NCBI RefSeq assembly: GCF_021028975.2
Contig: NC_059437.1
Coordinates: 32,612,001 to 32,676,000, forward strand
Direction: 5' to 3'
From: Sphaerodactylus townsendi
Taxonomy: Eukaryota
Length of the DNA: 64,000 nucleotides
Shown here: positions 690 to 59,085 of the stretch, piece by piece
Position numbering within the stretch: the stretch's first letter is position 1
How the letters are laid out: each line of letters begins with the position of its first letter
Translations under genes and position numbers: made by a program
The notes under the pieces: generated by a model
Told to the model about the DNA's origin: nothing
What the model saw: the letters and a program-made list of their open reading frames with translations, nothing else
Database searches by the model: none

Positions 690-3600
690 AAATGACTCGG
701 AGGAAATTATCACCTACATCTCCGAAAACACGACTGTGACTTCAGCTGATGAGGAGAAGCTGCTTCTTCTCAACAAGAATACTGAACTGCGTCGAATCAA
801 CAAGGAGGTGGGTGTCAGGAGGGAGGGCGACGGGCACTCCCAGGCCCAGGATCTGGGCAGATTTATAGGACCAGGGCTGAGAGTTCCCTTTAAGTTTTCT
901 GATCTGGCTCTGTTTGTGTTTTCTGTCTACATTTTTAAAAAGATGTTGTGAAAATGCTTTTATTATTGTTATTAAGTAGTTGATCCTGTAATACAGAAAG
1001 TCGGGTGTTTTACATTTATGAAAGATGCTCTTTTGGGATAATGTGCTCAGTAATAAGGAGCCATGAGGTGTCCCATTCCAGATTTCCTATGAAATCCATT
1101 TGAGAGCTACATATGCCAGTCCCTCTTGGGTGCTCTTCACCCTCCCATTGGAAAGTCTCCCTTCCAGCAGACCCCCCTCATATGCAATCCTTGCCTGCAA
1201 CTTCCTCCTCTTTCTATCTCCTGAAGCTGTTGAAGCTAAACCAGGACTGGGACTTCATCTATCACTCCACTAGCCTGGGGCTCCAGCACAAAGTGGGTGC
1301 CCTACAGGAGGAGGTGGCTGAGCTCAAGCTGCAAGCACAGAACCTCTCTGCAAAGCTAGAACATGAGCAGGTGAGTGCATGTGGTGGTTTGGCCCCTTCA
1401 CTACCCTCCCCCCAGTCTGTACAGTATAGGATGGGGTTCCACAATTTCATTTAAGTGTGTTGGGTACTATTTAGTACTTTGAGAATGGGGAGCAGGCACT
1501 ACCCACAAAATGGTTGACTGGGCCCAATCACAAGATTTTGAGAGGTTTCAAGCCAATCATCCTGTGATGGAGGCAGCGGCTCCGGAAAAGGTGCTCCCTG
1601 CAGACACAAAGCTGATGTCTCTGGACATCTTCAGAAGCACATCCTTCTCCAGTGAGGTAGAGAAAAGCCAACAAAAGAAGCAAATGAGCACCAGGAAAAC
1701 CATTAGTGGTCACCATGGTGCCCATGAGTTCTGTGACCTACTGTGATAAGGGTTGGGCAGGGAACAGTTAGATTGGTTTTGATGGGACAAAGGGTGGAGG
1801 AGGCATTGAGATAATCCAAGGACTAGAGCTGTGGGACAACCCTCACATAGCTAGAGTTGCTAACCTCCAGGTGAGGCCTGGAGATCTTCCAGAATTACAA
1901 CCACTCCCCAGGCAGCATAAATCACTTCTCCTGGAGAAAACAAGATTTTCTGGAGGGTGGAATCTTTCTTATCAAATCACAGCTAAGGTCACTCCACTCC
2001 TCAAACCCTACTTGCCAGGCTCCACCCCCAGAATCTCCAGGAACTTCCCAACCCAAAGTTGGCAACCCTATCATGCTCCAATGACAGAAGGAGCTCTATG
2101 TTCTTCCTAGGATGGAGTAAGTCAAAGGAAGTCAAGGTTGGAGTAAGTCAAAGGCAAGAATACCAGGGACTGAACCACGTATAAGTTCTCAGGCAGTTTT
2201 ATGCTTCTTCATTCTCTCTGCCACAGAACAAGAAGGAGTATTATGAACAAGCCCTCTTCCAGGAGCTGAAGAGGAATCAGGCATTACAGGAATACGTAAG
2301 GCACCTGGAACGCCGACAGCTTTCCAGCATGGACAGACAGCCAGATGCTGTGAGTTCCAAGGGGGACTGGCTCTTGCAACTACAGAGTTTACTACTCAGC
2401 AGAAGCTCCCCAAGGAAAAGGCAGGCCTGATGGGAAGAGGATTGAGAAGTTGGTCTGGCTAGCTCTCAGGATAGGAGGGCTGCCTCACACCATCAAAATC
2501 CTGCTCCTCCCAGTTCAGCAGCACTGACTCTGCTGAATGGTCCTGGCTCTAAGGCAGAGGTGTCCAACTCTGGCGCTTCAGATGTTCATGGACTACAATT
2601 CCCATCAGCCCCTGCTGGCTCTCTCCTAAGGAGACTCAAGGCTTACAAACTCCTTTCCCTTCTTCTCCTCACAACACCCATCCAACAAAATAACAGCAAC
2701 CTTTAACTAATTGCTGCCTCAGGTCAAGAGGGCTTTGGAATAGGGATGTCCTCCTTTTAATTTATTTGTATGCAGTTTTGCCCATTTTCATTGCAGATGT
2801 TCCCAATTTATCTATTTCTTTTATGCTGTATGTACATTAAATGTGAACTTATCTCCCTTATTTCACCATTTAAGATGCAGACAGTTCAAAACACAGGCAT
2901 CAATTTTGTCTATATTACTAACAAACGTCATTACTGCATTGTGTCTACAGAAGTGTCTGTATCAAGATTAGGCTAACTCCAAAACTTCCTATTCTCCTTA
3001 GGAATCCCGGGCATTTGTTCCCCTCCCCTTTGAAGACTTCTCAGCTCCCCAACACACACTTCCTGGAAAGAACGCAAAAGAGAACATCCCAAATCAGTGC
3101 CACCTACCATCCCCAGCTACCTGTGACTCCAAACCCAAAGAGCATCAGTGCTTAGTTCTACAGAGTGTGGATGCAGCTGCAGAGAAAGAGGTCTCTGACC
3201 TCAAAGAACATTTGGAGGCCTTAAAATGCCAGGTAATTGAGAAAAGCACTTTGGCCACTGCTGCAGGAGACAGGACCTTCCTACCTAGCTAGCTCCACCT
3301 TGATGCATTTGCCAATGGAGAGCAACATGGTGTGTTGTAAGGCAAGATGGGGAGCTGGCTGGTAGAATGAAGCAAGAGACAGTCAAATGAGCCAGGGCTT
3401 CCAGTAAAAGTTATGGCTATCTGGGTTGGGTAAATGGGAGGGCTTTGCAGGTACTACTGCTGTGTTTCCAATTGTTCCAAATGCATTTACAGAAGTTCTA
3501 TTTAGCCTTTGTACCCAATCAGGGGTACATCAAGGCAGCTAACATCCATATGACACACAAACAATGATGCAGAATCCAAAAACCACAAAATAACTTTTAC

Positions 3601-5353
3601 TGGGGACAACTAAAATGGCACCAAACCATGAGCAAGCTTTTGAGCCCCTCAGAAATTTTCATCAGGCTGGATGCTTTAAATGGGGGTGTGTATGTGGAGA
3701 TATTTCAGGCCACGAGTTGTAAAGTCTTAGCTTGCCAGCACCCTCATTTGAAATGGAGATGTGAAACAGTGCTGGCTATCCACAACCTCTTTCTGCTTCA
3801 GGCACGATGTTGGTAAAGCTTTTTCTATGCCTGCAAAGCTGGCTCCCTTTAATTTCTGTCAATCATTCAGCTGTTTACAGGCCAGGAGCCTTGCTAGCAA
3901 GAATGCCTGATAGCTCCAGCTGTCAGAAGCAGCGGCAGAGCAATCTGGCCATGGACATTCACCTTGAAGGCTGTATCACGTGGTCAGAAGTCTTATAAAT
4001 GATGGCCCAGCCTGCCTCTGCTTTGTGCTTTTTGCAGACGGAGATTTTTGAGGCAGATTACAGGACTGAGCAAAAGGATCAGCAGCGAATCAAGGCAGAG
4101 AACACAAAGCTCCGGCAGAAGGAGGAGGAGATGAGGCAGCAGATGGCCTTGCTGCAAGAGCAGGTGAGCACAGACACACCTTGAAGGAGGCAAGTGGGCA
4201 TCTCTGGGTGGCCAGAAACCCTCCTTATGGCAGATGGACTGTACTTCCCATGGCACTGGGCTTTCTCCAGAGATTCAAACATCACAAAGGCATATTGGCT
4301 CCAGCAAGGAGAGAAAGAAGGCTAAGGAAGAGTTGACTTAAGATGTCTCCAAGGACAGTGAAGAAGAATCCATAATGAGATCCTGTTCCCTGTCCTCAGC
4401 CCATCCCACATGCGCTCCTATGCTGTTAGGCTTGCCTCTGTATATCTGTGACCAACTCCTGGTCTGACTGGGGCTGCTGTGCAGGATTGCAGGGGAAGTA
4501 GGGTCACTGAATCGCTCTCGTGTCACCCCCGCGCCCAAAGCATGTCACACGTTATGGTTTTTAATGTGCGGCTACCAGTATTTCCCACCTGACTAACTCA
4601 GGCAATCAAACGAAGGATGCGAGCAAACTTGGCTTCAGATTTGTGGGGCCTCAATTTGAATTGGGACCACAGCTCAGGGGAAGAAGTGGCTTCACCCTTC
4701 CTCAGGGGAAAATGGCACAGAGGGAATGGTGGCACCATCTCCCCATCCCAGGGTTTTGAAGTTTATCAGGATCCTGCACACTTGTGAAGCAAATTCCCTT
4801 GTACTCACATGTGAGTGCCTGAGTCAAAGTCAGAGTAGAAAAACCAAGACACTGCACGTTAAAAAGGTGTAGTTTGGTCCCAAGCAAGCATGGAAAACTG
4901 GAAAATTCTATGCAAGGAAAAAGGGCAGTTGTAGGCTTAGCAAATATACTTTGTTCACCTGCCTCTCACTGCTTCCAGCCCCTCCTCTGCCTGCAGGGCA
5001 CAAGGCCCTGTGGGGCAGGGGCTGTACAGCTAATGGTAGAACATGGTGGCAGCAGCTGGCTTTCCCCCCTTCTTTATACTACCTTCTGTGTTTTTACTTT
5101 CAATTTTCTTAGCCATACTCCTGCTAGCCCCTGAGAGCCACCTGGTCTCCCTTTTCTGTCTCCCTTTGTGTAGCTGAAGATCTTTGAAGATGACTTCCGG
5201 AAGGAACGCTTGGACAAGCAAGTTCTTCAGCGCCTCCTGAAGGGAAAGCCAGATGCCAAGAAGCCTGTCCTGCCCCATCACTGCAGGAGCCAGGAGAAGC
5301 CCTTGAATAGTTCCTGTAGCTGCAGCTGCCACAAGAACCACCATCGCCAGTGA
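690..5353 (+). CDS. TNFAIP3-interacting protein (TNIP/ABIN family, TNIP3-like) coiled-coil protein with two UBAN-like motifs; 5' end uncertain
   Basis: AG/GT-bounded exons joined in phase 0: 690-807 (acceptor could instead be 612 or 649), 1227-1370, 2227-2349, 3002-3232, 4038-4163, 5174-5353 (TGA 5351-5353). The spliced protein has KELLKLNQDWD (cf. ABIN ELLEVNKQWD), LKCQTEIFEADYRTEQ and LQEQLKIFEDDFRKER (UBAN DFxxER), then a Cys/His-rich tail. No in-frame ATG found, so the start lies upstream. Confidence 0.8.
1852..2070. mobile_element. Interspersed repeat with AGGGTTGCCAAC-type inverted ends (probable MITE)
   Basis: TAGAGTTGCTAAC ... GTTGGCAACCCTA; related copies ~25975-26190 and ~26820-27020. 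Confidence 0.6.
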
Positions 5354-8743: not shown

Positions 8744-11700
8744 TCAGCGCATCAATAGGCTGTGCTTTGGCCCATCCACCCGCTCCAGCTTCTCAAAGTG
8801 CTTCCTGGCATTGCGAATGTTGATCAGTGTGGCTGCAGAAGCTGAGAAAGAGAAGAGACAGGATATGAGTGACAGCATCAGATTCAGAAGGTGCAAAAGG
8901 GGACTCTCTGCACTGGTGCAGAGAAGGACAACTGAACTAGGGAGACTGGAATAGCAAGCGAGGCGTAACAGCACCTCTGCCTCAAAGAAACTAAGGCAAT
9001 CTGGCAATGCTGCTTGCTCAGTCGGTACTCAGCACCAAGCCCCCTCCCCACACCATTCAGCTAGCATGACTTGTAGCTACCACCACTGCTACAGTGTAGA
9101 ATCTCTGCTCTTTGAAACATACGTATGGAAGGATCTGACATGACAACCATCACGTAAGTGTTTGATGTAAAGATATCGATGAAGGCTGCAAAGTTGGAGT
9201 TCCTGACCTCCATGCTCTGGAAAGAGGCAGCCAGTTTGCTGGTGGGAAAGGAGACAGAAATAACATTTATTAGCATAATGGCGCCGTTTGGTGCTCCAAA
9301 ACAAAACTCTTTTCAAAACAACCTCCATCAAAATAAAACACTCTCTCACCTGCAGCTCAACTTGAATTGTTTAATAATGTTGCTGATTTTCTCAAATCTG
9401 TGGATGTCACGCTGTTCTTTACACTGATAGTGGGAAATGACCTATTGGAAGAGACATTTGCTATAAGTAGGAACAGAATCAGCAGCACCACAGCTCAAGC
9501 CAGAGATTCTATGAGAACTCCAAGAACTCAGCTAATGGAAGGAGACCAATAAAACTATTGTTTTCAGGTCTTTTTGGGTGCTGCATCCATGAGCAAAAGA
9601 AAAAACAGTGGTTCAATCCTGGGAGAACAGAAGTTATATCCTGCCATGAGCCCTTCTTGGACAAAACCTTATCCGTAAAATATAAATAATGGAGCAACTA
9701 TATCTGGGTTCTTAGGAGGATGAACCATCAGTTTTTGTGTGAAAAGCTAATTGCTTTTTCCTCAGCAATAGTCCTATTACTTCTACTCCTCATTGAGACT
9801 GGAAAAAGGAAAGTATTGAGCAAGTTCCTAAACCCAGGTCAGTGATGTAAAGGCTTCCAAAAACCATGCGTAACAAAGCTGACAGAACCTAAGGTATTCC
9901 GCTCTCTCTCACCAGGAACGTGGCTCTTTCAAACAGAAGAACTTCATCAGCTTCTATGATCTGAGCAAAGTTCCTGAGATTCGTCTCCAGTTGTTGGACA
10001 TTGGGAATCAGCTGGTAGACTATACTGGACCAAGCCTGCTCAGAGAGAAGACATAACAGAACTCCATAGCCAGTTTTTCAACGTTACTTTAGCGCTGTGG
10101 GGTGAACCTACAGAAAAATGTGCTGCTGTACAAGAGAGAACCTTAGGAACATCCAGTCGGAAGGTTCACTCTGCCTCTTCTTTACAATACATCTGGGTAA
10201 ATAAGAGGGAAAAGCCCAGATGAACACAGGGGGCAGACACAGTAGTACAAACCTTGTAAAGAGTTTCATCCCAGATGGATGTTCTAAAGCAGGCACACTC
10301 CAAAGGACGGGATAGACGTTTCAAGTCTTCTTCTCTCTCTTTGAAAATCTAAAGAACGAAAATCAGACAGTCTCTGATGAGGACATAGTTTTTTTGCTGT
10401 TTTAAGTGTGATTCGCCTTCTATGATAGAAAGGCTTGTGAACCCCAAAGAGTCCAAATTCTCTACCAATGACACTCCATTTAGGAAGTTAAATGTCCATA
10501 ATTCCATTGTTATACAACTGTTTCTAAGCCTTGAGTTTGGAAAGCCCATAGGATTTTGGCTACGGTCTGAAATAGCAATTGGCAAGAAAGAAGTACACAT
10601 CTAATACTGGATTTTACACAGGTACCGAATAAAGCTACGGCCTTTTCCTTTGCCAAGTTTGGTCACTGCTGACCAAGAACATCTTTAATACTATGTCTTG
10701 TTCCTAGGAGCTCTTGAATGATTTTTAATAGCTGCTGTTCCAATAGCTATCTTTTGAAAGGAGAGAGAAAGTTTCCCAAAGTTAAGAATCAAGCCAGAAG
10801 TTAAAGAGGGGGAAAAGAGGAATTCACTTTGGGGGGAAATGCATCCTCAGCATCACTTTGGGCGTCTCAAGCCTCACCAGATCACGCTGGTCCTCCTGAA
10901 CTAAGTCCATCTTATGCACAAGACAAAAGATTTTGGCATCTGATGAGTTCTGCAGAATGGCTTCCAAACATGACTGGTAATAGTGCATGTCCTTCTCAAG
11001 CTCCCGGCTCTCCACATCAAAGACGTAGATCAGAACCTCCACGTTACGAAAGATGTTATCACGCTGGCTAGTGAAATAATTCTCCATGAAGGTGTCCTGT
11101 CTGGAGGGGGGAAGAAAGTAATTGAGTCCAGTGCAACCACTATGAAAACCTTTGTTTCTCCGGTATTAAATGTGCTTGTCTTGCCATATCCCTCACATTT
11201 CTAAAAAAAAGAGCCTGGTTTCCTTCTCCAATTCATCCTGCTCCTGATATCAATACAATAATATTCAAGGCTATCCATTCAAAAGTATTTCAATATGCAT
11301 GTTTTCTGACCTTATTAAAAGTTTCCCATAACAGCCCTCTAAAGAAAATAAACTCTGCTGCCATCACACTCTGGCCAGCCTTCCAAATATTTTGAAGCAT
11401 GCAAATGAGAAATACCTACCCTCCACAGTCCCATAAGTTTAACACCAAGTTGCCCAGAAACCGAACATGAGAATGCTCCACATCAACTGAAAAACAAGGC
11501 AGGAGAAATGTGATCATTGTACTGCAGGTGAGGAACAAAGATCAGCAGCACCATCGACTTAGTCACAGAACAGCAAGTTAGTGCTCACACACAAACAAGC
11601 CTGATACAGCCTTGACTGGCCTACACTTGATATTATCCGGCACCCATACAAAAGACTCCCCAGAAACAAGTGCTATCACTATTATGATTTGATTTGACTT

Positions 11701-13193
11701 TTAGTTTATATACTGCCCTCCCCTGAAGGGCTCCCTCCCTATCAAAGCAGACAGCTTTTTTTTTGGCCTGTCCACCCACTTCAGATTCCTGCCATATCGC
11801 AGCTATTGTTACGGAAAGAGTGTGATGCTGTCAGATTCCAAACTCCCAACAGAGGAACCCCAACAAACCATGAAGCTCCACGACAGTGCCCTGGTGCCAT
11901 TTGCTGTGGCTCAGAATAATCTCTCACGAATGCATAAAGCTGCCTCATATAGGATCAGACTAAAGTGGGTGTGGTCTACTCTGACTACCCACAGCTCAGA
12001 TCTTTCACATTACTTGCTACTTGATTCAGGGATGCCAGAAATTATATGTAATACCTGCTGCAAGTAAAGCACTGAGCCACATTCGCACCAAACCTCCTTT
12101 CAGAAAGGAGGCCAGTACACTAACCAGAGCAGAACCAAAGGTTCTCATGCTACTAAAGAGCAGACAGAACTTAAACAACCTTCAGTGCATGGAGAAATAT
12201 TCAGGTTGATCCCCTAGAACATCTCTCTGTAAGCCCCACTGTAGAAACCTGGGGCAACTGTGTTCCACAAAAGGACATCCCTGACTAATCTAGTAGGCCA
12301 TACTGGCATAACAGCAATATCCTATGCTAGGGAATGGCTAGATTTAACACAAATAAAAGAGAATTAAGCAACAGAGTTCAGTGGAACCAGTTTTCAGACA
12401 TTCTTCACTCCTTTTGCTGAGGGGGAGGTCAAACATCCCGAGGCCCCCTATCCAGACTGCACTGGCTCTGGGCTCCCTATCCCTATCCCTTGGCAACAAA
12501 CACTCTTAAGTGCTACCTACTTAGGGAACTCTGCAAAACAAACTAATTTGCCTCTGTTTGTAGAAAACAGAAGAGAACTGAATTTTTAAAATGGCACAGA
12601 AAAGCCTCAAAGGCTCAATAAAGAAAACTTCTTACTGGTAGCTCCGAGGCGTCGGGTATCCCGTGCAATGTAGTTTGCAAAAATAATGGATCGCATGCTG
12701 GTCTTGCCAGACCCACTTTTTCCCATCAACAGCACCTGATAACAAACGTAATTATTTCTAATAGCTCTTTGATGAAGATAAAGTCATTGATAATGCCCCC
12801 ATCAGCTGTTGTTTGCTTGGTTGGGAAAGGACTCCAAAATGTTTGCCCTAGTTATATACTGCATCAATTTCCTGCTTACACAAACATACAACAGTAGATT
12901 TACCCTAGAACTGTGGTTCCCAATCTTTTTTCACTTGCATATCCCTTGGCAACTCATTTCCCTAAAACTGTACCCTCATATTAGCAAACCTATTATGTAA
13001 TTTTTTGCATAACCACTCTGGCATAGCCAACCACTCTGGTGCATACTCTTTGGGGTACACATACCCCAGGTTGTGAACTATTGCCCTAGAAGACACAAAG
13101 CTCAGCATTTTGTAGGCAAACATCCTTCTGCTTCAGCCAAAATCAAGCTTCAGACCCAAGTCTTACCTTCTTCTTCATGGCTGTGTTCGGCAT
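8744..13193 (-). CDS. RRAGB: Ras-related GTP-binding protein A/B (RagA/RagB), 313 aa, intron-containing locus
   Basis: Coding exons 13193-13167 (MPNTAMKKK), 12735-12636, 11486-11420, 11100-10878, 10348-10253, 10035-9913, 9441-9350, 9238-9123, 8841-8744. All GT-AG, total 942 nt = 313 aa + stop. P-loop [18 protein letters not shown] and C-terminal [11 protein letters not shown] are present. The protein is nearly identical to recalled mammalian RagA; the introns and linkage to CLCN5 point to the RRAGB locus. Confidence 0.97.
12911..13083. mobile_element. hAT-Charlie-type MITE in a Rag intron
   Basis: Degenerate TIRs, perfect 8-bp TSD CCCTAGAA; related copy at 49372-49535. Confidence 0.75.
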
Positions 13194-54400: not shown

Positions 54401-55739
54401 TTGTACTGCTACTAACCATTACAGGAGGCTGGGGTTACAGGGTAGATGCATTGGGGGAGGTGACGAGAAACAGTGTCAATGATTACCAAATACACTCCAC
54501 AGACTTCTGCAAATGTTACATCTCTGATGCATTAATAATGTGTGGCATGTATAATTCAGAAAGTGTTTTAACCTTATCTTGTTTGCTCACACAACAACCA
54601 TGTGAGAACAATTACTGAAATTTTAGAAGGAAACTGAAGTCGTTCAGGAATTAGTGTAGATTCCTGCTTACTCAGAGTTGTGTATTAAGCACAACCTGAG
54701 GTTTAGTGGTAGGACAGGGCTCCTTGGTGGCCCCTTTACTAACAGCCAGGGTCTGAACCCTCCTGCGGCCTCTGGGTTTGCAATTGGGACTGTGCAGTCG
54801 GCTGCAAGGGGCCAGAAGGCGCTGTGCCAAATACCTCCTCACAAATCCCACCACCTTAGTTTGCATCTGGATTAGTGAAGGTGCTTTAGGAGCCTCTGAT
54901 GGGTGAGTGAAAGATGATAAATACAATTCAGGCACCTAAGCCTAAATGCAGGAGTATCATCCATTCCTGGAAGAAAAGAAGACACCAGGGTAGAGTGGAG
55001 GAGGTCCAGGCTAGCAGCCATTTCCAGCCATCTGGGAAATGGGTCAAATGACAGCTGGAAGCAGTTAGAGGTACAAGGCATGGATCGCACACATTTCTAA
55101 TGACGTGTGAAGGTTTTTGTGCATGATGGGAGGGGGGCTAATGAGTTGCAGCCAGTAGACTTGTGGTTTTGTTAAGCAGAATAGCCTGTCTGAATTTCTG
55201 GTGGTCTGCCTTCATATTTCCAGCTGTGTTTCGAAAAGCAACTCGCTGTCCCATCATCTGAAGTGCCACTAGGTTCTTGTGTCTGGATCATTTGATATTC
55301 TGTGTAAGTTGTGGGAGGTCAAAGTTCAGCTCTGCATGGCACCTGTTAAGGGGTCTCACTGGGATTCAGCATGCGAGAGGGTGGATGAGAGGGGAGATGT
55401 GGTTTCACTTTGCAAACACCCAAATAGTAGAAATAAGCTGTTGCTAAGGGCTGCTATCTGCTTCAGCTCCCCACAAGGATCTGGCAGCTTCCATTATGCC
55501 CCTGTCAATGACAAAGGAGACTTTCAGGAGCAAGGTGAGGTAGGCCATAGGCCCCCTTGTTGCACAGTAACAGCCATGGCGTTTATTGTTTTAATGGGGA
55601 CCTGACACGGTCTTAGCAAGCCTTTGAGTGCCCAAAGATCTAGCAGCAGCTTACGTGGAGGAACGCTCGTGTTCAGGTTGTTCCAGAAAGGGTATCCCCA
55701 AAATATTGACACGATTTCAGACGTTTGTGGCACACATAC

Positions 55740-56630
55740 AAGCGTTTCGATCAGCAGCTTCTTCAGTTCTCCTGTTAGAAGGGCTCCACTTGTGTAAGCC
55801 TGTTTGATCTGCTCCAGCTTCTCATCATCTTCAAGGAAGAACGTGAGGTACATGTAAGAGACGTCCACATCGCAATTGCCCCCGTACTTCCGGTGCTCTT
55901 CGACAGTGTCTTTCCCACCAGAGAAGGCATGCTTGTTGATCTTTGTTTTGATTTGCTTGGGTGTGTCGGTGAGAAAGAGGGACGAATTGGGGTTGCTGGC
56001 GCTCATTTTCGTTTGGGCCCCTTGTAAGGCTGGGAAGAACACGGAATGCATTAATGCCGGCTTGGGGTAGCCGATCCGCGGGGCCACGTCTCTGGATTCA
56101 TTTCTGAAACCAGGATCCCTGATCAGATAGATTGCATGGGATCAAAGCCACTGGAATATCAGCTAAGCTTATCGTTTGAAGGAGTCTGCTTGGAAATGAT
56201 GAGTGTACCAGAAGGACGGAGCAGCTTGAATGGCAGGGAAACTAATCTTTCCGATGCAGTCGCTGTCTGTAAAGCCAAAAATTCCCTTGACTTGGTTGAA
56301 TGTAACGTGCTTTTGAACTCTTAAGATGTTCTTGTAGAATTCTGGACTTGTTCCCAAATAGTCCAGATCAGAAAAGATGAAGGTTTTATTGACATCGAAT
56401 CCTAAGGCTATGAGGTCCTTGACGTTTTCTATGGTATACTGGTATGCCTTCTCAACCGTTAGATCTTTCCAGAGGTATTTCTCATCATCAGTCAACTGTA
56501 TGACTAAAGGAACATTAAATACATCTTGAAGCCACTTTGTGAAAATGAATGGGATAAGGTGGCCAACGTGGATGGCTTCGGACGAAGGGCCTCTGCCTGT
56601 GTACAGGTAAAAGGGCTTCTTATTTTCATG
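55740..56630 (-). pseudogene. WARS1: Processed (intronless) retrocopy fragment of cytoplasmic tryptophanyl-tRNA synthetase
   Basis: Contiguous homology from [20 protein letters not shown] through KMSAS to [10 protein letters not shown] with no introns; in-frame stops TAA/TAG/TGA within 56094-56210; N- and C-termini missing. Confidence 0.92.
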
Positions 56631-57398
56631 TGGCAAGTTTTGGCCTCACTTTTAGCCTTTTCCCCAATGTGCAAACCCTCAGTGGAACCCCCAGATTGTA
56701 GATGGCTTGAGAAAGTTAAAAGACTACTCTCCTCACAAAGTTAACATTTTTAAGGTAACTAAAGTAGGCAGGTTTTATTTAAAAAGATATCCAGTTTCTA
56801 AACTTTGCAACATATTCCCCCTTCGGGCAGAACCCAAACAAATGTAATAAAACCACAAGAGAAACAACCAGTACGGCGTGTTCTTCATTAACCCTGCCAT
56901 CTTAAAACCCCTGATCTTTTCCTAGTCCTCCAGATTCTCCTCAGTCAGAGCAAGGGAAGCCACCCTCCCTCTGATTGGCGGAGAGCCACCAGTGGAGGAA
57001 TTCTGTGTGGCTTCTGTAAATCCAACACAGATGTGTTTTGGCTTCATCACATGTGCATAACAAGATTAAGTGGCAGAGGATCCCTGGCTTTTATTGAAGA
57101 GGCAAGGTCTTGGATCTGAGGACTGTATCTTAAAATCATTTCCCGCTCTTCCCCCAAGGAGCTCACGGTGCCAAACGTGGTTCCCCCCTCCTCCATTTTA
57201 TTCTCACAATGAACCTGTGAAGCAGGCTAGGTCTGAGAGAGTTCAGGTGGCTCAAGGTCAGGCGGTGAGTTTCATGCCTCTGCACAGCGGGAGCCGACAC
57301 AATAGAAGTATTATTTTGCGCTTTGGTTGGAAGTTGGGGAAGGTAAGCCAAAGACAATTTAGCATGTGGAAGGAAAGGTGAGGGACAATCCAGTACTG

Positions 57399-58893: not shown

Positions 58894-59085
58894 NNNNNNN
58901 NNNNNNNNNNNNNNNNNNNNNNNNNNNNNNNNNNNNNNNNNNNNNNNNNNNNNNNNNNNNNNNNNNNNNNNNNNNNNNNNNNNNNNNNNNNNNNNNNNNN
59001 NNNNNNNNNNNNNNNNNNNNNNNNNNNNNNNNNNNNNNNNNNNNNNNNNNNNNNNNNNNNNNNNNNNNNNNNNNNNNNNNNNNNN
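58894..59085. other. Assembly gap (192 N)
   Basis: Run of N. Confidence 1.

Follow-up and report, generated by a model that had tools for sequence, protein, structure and literature searches.

The gene at the locus

The window analysed here is a stretch of 64,000 nucleotides from the gecko Sphaerodactylus townsendi (assembly GCF_021028975.2, contig NC_059437.1, positions 32,612,001 to 32,676,000 of the forward strand), and its beginning holds six coding exons of an ABIN-like (TNIP-like) gene. The last two of these exons, termed B and C below, each encode a UBAN-type motif, and the two motif cores lie exactly 42 residues apart. The evidence gathered across jawed vertebrates makes it very probable that this tandem layout is real, ancient and conserved, and the comparison of the two motifs with solved UBAN structures indicates how they might share the work of binding ubiquitin.

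All of the exons lie on the plus strand. The first (690-807, start phase 2) encodes an acidic and serine-rich motif and the start of an N-terminal coiled coil, and corresponds to residues 65-103 of A0ACB8FYA7 (P0083), a 370-residue S. townsendi entry of UniRef named 'Uncharacterized protein'. It is followed by an exon of 48 residues (1227-1370; residues 104-151) with an LNQ[DE]WD coiled-coil block and by one of 41 residues (2227-2349; residues 152-192) with an NK.EYYEQ...QEYV block. Exon A (3002-3232; 77 residues, 193-269) encodes a fast-evolving linker and then the start of a long helix (KEVSDLKEHLEALKCQ); the exon ends in LKEHLEALKCQ. Exon B (4038-4163; 126 nucleotides, residues 270-311) opens with TEIFEADYRTEQKDQ and contributes motif 1, with the core IFEADYRTEQ at 4044-4073 (family consensus IYEADYKTEH), and a zipper with an invariant Glu-Asn pair. 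The terminal exon C (5174-5353; 59 residues, 312-370, and a stop) opens with LKIFEDDFRKERLDK, and it contributes the canonical motif 2, with the core IFEDDFRKER at 5180-5209, a short zipper that reaches Gly335/Pro337, and a Cys/His-rich tail, HHC...CSCSCH..HH (5276-5350), ahead of the TGA stop at 5351-5353.

Exons A, B and C are all in phase 0, with AG acceptors that follow pyrimidine tracts and GT donors (CAG|gtaatt and CAG|gtgagc). The segments 691-807, 1227-1370, 2227-2349, 3002-3232, 4038-4163 and 5174-5350 translate exactly and contiguously into residues 65-370 of A0ACB8FYA7, hence the deposited gene model uses the junctions 3232/4038 and 4163/5174, and this entry served as the stand-in for the spliced product in the homology and structure steps. 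Judged by the 64 residues encoded upstream, the window would contain exons 2 to 7 of the gene. The initial annotation had described two consecutive phase-0 exons with UBAN cores in the same register, and translation reproduces the peptides that it quoted exactly; the spacing of 42 residues is the length of exon B, 42 codons. Its description of a degenerate first repeat (DY..EQ) with a zipper, and of a canonical second repeat with a short zipper followed by a Cys/His tail, likewise agrees with the translation.

The first exon of the window also contains a strongly conserved acidic, Ser/Thr-rich stretch, SEE..TYISE..TVTSADEEKL, ahead of the first coiled coil. This stretch is reminiscent of LIR/FIP200-binding motifs regulated by phosphorylation, such as FEVV in TNIP1, but lacks the canonical aromatic-x-x-aliphatic core. 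The introns contain very high-copy interspersed repeats at about 1769-2102 and 2437-2770. There the DNA runs give a summed contig depth of 10^3 to 10^6, as opposed to about 20-90 in other parts, and loose ends and joints are numerous.

UBAN character and homology of exons B and C

Searched singly, the gecko exons give weak signals. Exon B alone matches the solved UBAN of TNIP1 with an E-value of 0.17 and exon C alone with 0.86, in the same register, and Pfam assigns exons A, B and C, taken singly, to no family. Profiles built from the family give a clear signal: an exon B profile from 34 species matches the TNIP1 UBAN with an E-value of 4.6e-6 over 41 of its 42 columns, and for exon C a profile restricted to its first 30 residues finds TNIP1 with 2e-4 over the 14-residue core. 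A 99-column profile of the whole block has TNIP1 as its best solved relative (7.5e-9, 61 columns), followed by optineurin, NEMO and TNIP2, with nothing else above these, which bears out the assignment to the ABIN/TNIP family made by the initial annotation. The same profile extends in register into the TNIP1 residues LKAFKD, where the solved chain stops.

The profiles of exons B and C also match each other (hhalign probability 84%, E-value 7e-6), with columns 2-19 of one aligned to columns 2-19 of the other in identical register, and the earlier proposal that the tandem motifs arose by duplication is thereby supported. On these alignments exon B is equivalent, by place and by sequence, to the canonical (TNIP1) UBAN exon, and exon C bears a second copy of the core, the more canonical of the two. 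A relic second core was looked for in TNIP1 itself, where the exon C profile aligns to one stretch only. Motif 2 has the UBAN core D-F-x-x-E-R with the preceding [ILV]-[FY]; motif 1 resembles this core and departs from it, reading D-Y-R-T-E-Q in the gecko. A recent duplication was considered as the source of the pair and is ruled out, since sharks have the pair too and exons B and C share only the 18-column core.

Conservation across jawed vertebrates

An exhaustive HMMER search with exon B retrieved 38 proteins. Every full-length protein among them has a B-type exon, LK[IV][FY]EDDFRKERSDKQ.LQRLL follows directly in nearly all, and the proteins that lack exon C after B are mis-modelled at their 3' ends (e.g. 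P0013, P0147). A word search that started from a caecilian protein gave 258 relatives. Among fishes they come from sharks, rays, bichir, sturgeon, gar, bowfin, many teleosts, coelacanth and lungfish, and among tetrapods from all three amphibian orders, turtles, alligator, palaeognath birds, geckos, a skink, Rhineura, Pogona, echidna and platypus. The zebrafish orthologue is listed as si:ch211-153b23.7; automatic names elsewhere include TNIP3, TNIP3-like, TNIP1-like, uncharacterized and several spurious coiled-coil names. The initial annotation had placed the protein in sauropsid signalling, a restriction that has to be dropped, since the layout is already found in cartilaginous fishes and is present across jawed vertebrates.

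The two cores are exactly 42 residues apart, without any insertion or deletion, in 118 of 120 unique segments, and the other two look like annotation artefacts. Because the same pair recurs at the same spacing throughout the jawed vertebrates, the layout of the gecko gene is not a product of chance, and orthologues do retain the first repeat, whose absence would have spoken against a tandem architecture. Over the 118 unique sequences, with positions counted within each exon, motif 2 is close to invariant: E at position 5, D at 6, D at 7 and F at 8 are each present in 100%, followed by E at 11 (99%), R at 12 (97%), D at 14 (100%), K at 15 (100%), L at both 21 and 22 (100% each) and K at 25 (81%). 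Motif 1 has a signature of its own, with E at position 5 (81%), A at 6 (88%), D at 7 (92%), Y at 8 (97%), E at 11 (100%), D at 14 (97%), R or H at 15 (58% and 40%), the Glu-Asn pair at 21 and 22 (99% and 100%) and L at 25 (100%). Its position 12 varies (H 68%, Q 22%, R 8%), and Arg12 occurs mainly in cartilaginous fishes; sharks keep DY..ER. This distribution suggests that both cores were near-canonical at the start and that motif 1 would have settled later on its own conserved signature. At position 13 of motif 2 (5210-5212) S. townsendi is the sole carrier of Leu, where 108 of the 118 unique sequences have Ser (ERSDK to ERLDK).

The region that follows motif 2 differs between lineages. Non-squamates have a conserved P.LVHRCN, then C.KHCE.H...EC..H and a terminal QASPFSIDY[HK] within the C-terminal 60-70 residues (P0046, P0032, P0007 and others), and geckos have the shortened tail HHC...CSCSCH..HH, their form of the HRCN...C.KHCE.H cluster of other vertebrates, without the terminal QASPFSIDY[HK]. 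No Pfam family matches this C-terminal Cys/His region.

Selection was examined against the collinear locus of another gecko, Heteronotia binoei (L001), with which the introns are ~70-76% identical. DNA identity is 93% in exon B and 89% in exon C, and in exon A it is 77%, near the intron level. The ratio of non-synonymous to synonymous substitution rates (dN/dS), calculated by the Nei-Gojobori method from these two geckos and therefore from small underlying counts, is 0.15 for exon B and 0.21 for the whole of exon C, with 0.04 for the first 23 codons of the latter. The remaining values are 0.29 for exon A (the linker), 0.45 for exon 1227-1370 and 0.22 for exon 2227-2349. The two motif exons are far from the ratio near 1 that would have spoken against the tandem architecture. 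The DNA runs of S. townsendi agree with the assembly. Exon B and the motif 2 core are free of variants in them, a comparison that has no power at ~0.7% divergence.

Among mammals, monotremes have both motifs intact. A query with a wombat protein returned 80 hits, all 80 of the same ABIN-like family, which included 7 marsupial species and no placental protein. The marsupial copies evolve fast (70% identity between wombat and koala), and prolines, deletions or a change of D-Y to N-S have destroyed their motif 1 (P0025, P0165-P0171). Their motif 2 is eroding by changes such as EDNF and EDDL, and motif 1 decays first. Birds are represented in the lists of relatives by palaeognaths only.

Predicted coiled coil and dimer

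In the AlphaFold2 model built on the family alignment, residues 250-335 of A0ACB8FYA7 are predicted to form one helix, with a mean predicted local distance difference test score (pLDDT) of 90.7; the helix stops at Gly335/Pro337. The predicted homodimer reaches an interaction prediction score from aligned errors (ipSAE) of 0.37, compared with 0.00 for the best control, a mark that was reached in calibration by 21 of 30 solved homodimers and by none of 23 single chains. The runs share at least 91% of contacts, with pLDDT of at least 81. The dimer is predicted to be parallel and in register, with a 3-4 spacing that is unbroken from 252 to 333, and the best predicted contact is Asn291-Asn291, at an Asn that is invariant across the family.

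In this model Phe273 and Phe315 occupy equivalent heptad positions, as do Asp276-Tyr277 and Asp318-Phe319. The initial annotation had placed both motifs on the same face of one continuous coiled coil; the continuity of the predicted helix and the matching heptad positions agree with this, but the face is shared in heptad terms only. From standard coiled-coil geometry, with a pitch of about 14-15 nm, we infer that the supercoil would rotate the stripe by roughly 150 degrees along the 62 Angstrom that separate the cores. On reaching the second core, a straight ubiquitin chain would then face the site related by the two-fold axis.

Putative function of the two motifs

The deduced protein carries the sequence hallmarks of an ABIN-type adaptor. 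In the explanation that we prefer on balance, it is the product of an ancient ABIN-like gene with two UBAN-type sites, of which motif 2 is the main one and motif 1 is weaker or differently tuned. The pair would go back to an event in which the UBAN exon, or its 5' part, was duplicated before cartilaginous and bony vertebrates diverged. A helix of about 85 residues, encoded by the last coding exons, would then form a parallel, in-register dimer that displays both cores. Motif 2 has the full core, an acidic residue just ahead of its Asp-Phe and, in the model, about 16 further helical residues after the core, which by analogy should be enough for proximal-ubiquitin contacts of the NEMO type. Motif 2 is for these reasons taken as the most likely principal site for polyubiquitin (M1/K63), and the zipper of exon B would serve as its N-terminal half. 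Motif 1 would most likely act as a second, weaker or differently tuned site for ubiquitin or for a partner, and would add avidity. Its signature ADY..EH.DRER (with R for H in sharks) is under purifying selection, and the gecko has drifted from it to DY..EQ.DQQR. Such a division of labour between the motifs, like a role in NF-kB/A20-type signalling, is putative.

Several observations weigh against this explanation. CC2-LZ (PF16516) has a gathering score of 35.3; the gecko protein stays below it with 21.9 bits, and the orthologue of the white shark reaches 35.9 bits. The two CC2-LZ matches anticipated by the initial annotation were recovered in the sense that each gecko half matches separately (22.7 and 20.8 bits, profile positions about 49-99 and 49-79), but below that threshold. 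Furthermore, the residues of NEMO that contact the proximal ubiquitin are, as we take it, R, R and E at +5, +8 and +9 from the Asp. Motif 2 has R, K and Q there and thus deviates at two of the three, the family consensus of motif 1 has H, R and E, and the gecko motif 1 has Q, Q and Q, in addition to Tyr in place of Phe. With Y, Q, Q and Q at these positions, a canonical second di-ubiquitin site at the gecko motif 1 is doubtful. The Asp of motif 1 is itself replaced in some squamates (E in Rhineura, K in Pogona). The favourable dimer score may stem from the memory of the model for solved UBAN dimers. In addition, all four S. townsendi runs found to contain the stretch are DNA, from one study, and predicted isoforms are recorded in which one of the two exons is missing: Emydura X2 (P0173) ends after B without C, and bilby X2 (P0168) skips B in frame. 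Ubiquitin binding by both motifs is a claim that we put forward tentatively, leaning towards doubt.

The strongest competitor is that motif 2 is the single functional UBAN and that exon B provides a dimerising zipper, the N-terminal half of the site or a surface for another partner. The protein would then be a usual ABIN with one site. This has a realistic, if minor, chance of being correct. It would account for the invariance of motif 2 and for a motif 1 that lacks F and, in bony vertebrates, R, with further losses in squamates, and it fits the observation that the invariant positions of exon B belong mostly to the zipper (E21, N22, L25, M32, Q35, M36, L38, L39) and that motif 1 is the first to decay in marsupials. 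However, the positions of motif 1 that face away from the zipper (A6, D7, Y8, E11 and D14, at the frequencies given above) have been kept for more than 400 million years, and a pure spacer would not need such conservation of outward positions, which argues that motif 1 is more than a spacer; the retention of DY..ER in sharks points the same way. Both motifs erode in marsupials, where constraint is relaxed, and this counts in favour of two sites as well.

In its most far-reaching form, the two-site explanation would make the protein a sixth UBAN protein of jawed vertebrates and a fourth ABIN paralogue lost in placentals, which reads chains of at least four M1/K63 ubiquitins bivalently through two sites about 62 Angstrom apart. 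As a complete statement this is speculative and unlikely to hold in every part. If a bivalent reader were realised, it could provide an avidity or length filter, and with it an extra layer of control over NF-kB or autophagy in non-placental vertebrates.

Gene identity and exon usage

Whether the gene is a separate ABIN is a question distinct from that of binding. Downstream, the ABIN-like gene faces an intact, multi-exon RagA/B GTPase gene in tail-to-tail orientation (8747-13349, minus strand), which is the neighbour in Heteronotia too (a 313-aa product with Gtr1_RagA). The human TNIP3 neighbourhood, which we take to be NDNF-QRFPR-ANXA5, differs from this. We consider it probable that the gene is a distinct fourth ABIN-type paralogue that was lost in placentals. 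The alternative, rather improbable in our estimate, is that it is a plain TNIP3 (ABIN-3) orthologue and that mammals were secondarily reduced to one UBAN. Databases often name the gene TNIP3 or TNIP3-like, and its block order (NQ.WD, NK.E.YE, linker, UBAN) is presumably that of human ABIN-3; the block of exon 2227-2349 presumably also resembles the AHD1 of ABIN-1 and ABIN-3. Against a TNIP3 identity stand the RagA/B gene downstream in two geckos, the labels 'uncharacterized LOC' or 'TNIP1-like' on the marsupial and monotreme copies, and the two reversals that it would take to derive the DF..ER of mammals from DY..EH.

That B and C are alternative exons, each mRNA carrying one UBAN-type motif, is very improbable: exon B is a symmetrical phase-0 cassette of 126 nucleotides that can be skipped in frame, and the predicted bilby isoform lacks B and that of Emydura lacks C, but a 1905-nt Logan contig of another sauropsid (L004) has an uninterrupted 408-aa open reading frame with B joined to C, short Logan contigs (1.2-2.4 kb) of several taxa encode full-length products with both exons, and the deposited gecko model also joins the two. 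Mutually exclusive use as the main form is ruled out by the transcript contig together with the 118 of 120 segments that have both exons, and alternative use of B or C may occur as a minor form.

Other features of the window

Further along the window, an intronless copy that resembles cytoplasmic tryptophanyl-tRNA synthetase (WARS1) lies at 55524-56636 on the minus strand. Of its two adjacent open reading frames, one matches residues 150-290 and the other residues 324-439 of the human enzyme of known structure (E-values of 1e-83 and 1e-63). The frame is broken between the two, and the copy probably represents a processed pseudogene. At 58894-59085, 192 consecutive N mark an assembly gap or masked sequence.

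Comparison with known UBAN proteins

Gene models of the family are publicly available and uncharacterised. A description of the double-UBAN architecture was not found, in line with the initial annotation, which knew of none. Literature searches gave nothing relevant on si:ch211-153b23.7, on a tandem or second UBAN, on a TNIP4/ABIN-4 or on TNIP1-3 in teleosts, nor was a second UBAN core found described for any ABIN. Its absence from human and mouse is probably why the family has been missed. The family lends itself to a natural test of how preference for chain length or linkage depends on the distance between sites and on how many there are, with paired natural variants of the core (DF..ER and DY..EH) and with zebrafish and Xenopus orthologues that are open to genetics. 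Furthermore, the decay in marsupials and the absence in placentals amount to a datable gene-loss event in innate-immune signalling.

The closest known system is TNIP1/ABIN-1, the UBAN (AHD2) of which has been solved as a dimer with M1-diubiquitin (PDB 6N5M, 6N6R, 6N6S, 7EAL, 7EAO). Motif 2 has IFE-DF--ERSD in common with it, and the gecko protein is likewise predicted to form a parallel coiled-coil dimer. In ABIN-1, E484, the acidic residue that matches the one before the DF of motif 2, strengthens the binding of M1-diubiquitin (10.1101/521815). TNIP1 has one UBAN core, whereas the gecko protein has two, 42 residues apart, with Y for F and Q/H for R in motif 1; it is also much shorter (370 residues) and stops soon after motif 2 with its Cys/His tail. 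Mammalian cells have three TNIP homologues, TNIP1-3 (as stated in the TNIP1 literature). Of the other two, TNIP3/ABIN-3 is similar in size to the gecko protein and lends its name to most automatic annotations of the family, and the UBAN coiled coil of TNIP2/ABIN-2 (PDB 5H07) aligns weakly to the motif 2 region (query 34-86, E-value 0.016). TNIP2 has a single UBAN, unlike the gecko protein.

NEMO (CC2-LZ) and optineurin (UBAN) fall into the same Pfam family, CC2-LZ, and match the family profile with E-values of 4e-4 to 3e-2; the optineurin UBAN aligns in two stretches, once with motif 1 and once with motif 2. Both proteins end in a C-terminal ubiquitin-binding zinc finger. In each of them one UBAN precedes a long zipper, whereas the second core of the gecko protein stands in a short zipper and is followed by a different Cys/His pattern. 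The literature counts NEMO, optineurin and ABIN-1, -2 and -3 as the UBAN proteins, five in all and each with one UBAN, and to these the gene described here adds a layout in which two cores are held in a fixed register.

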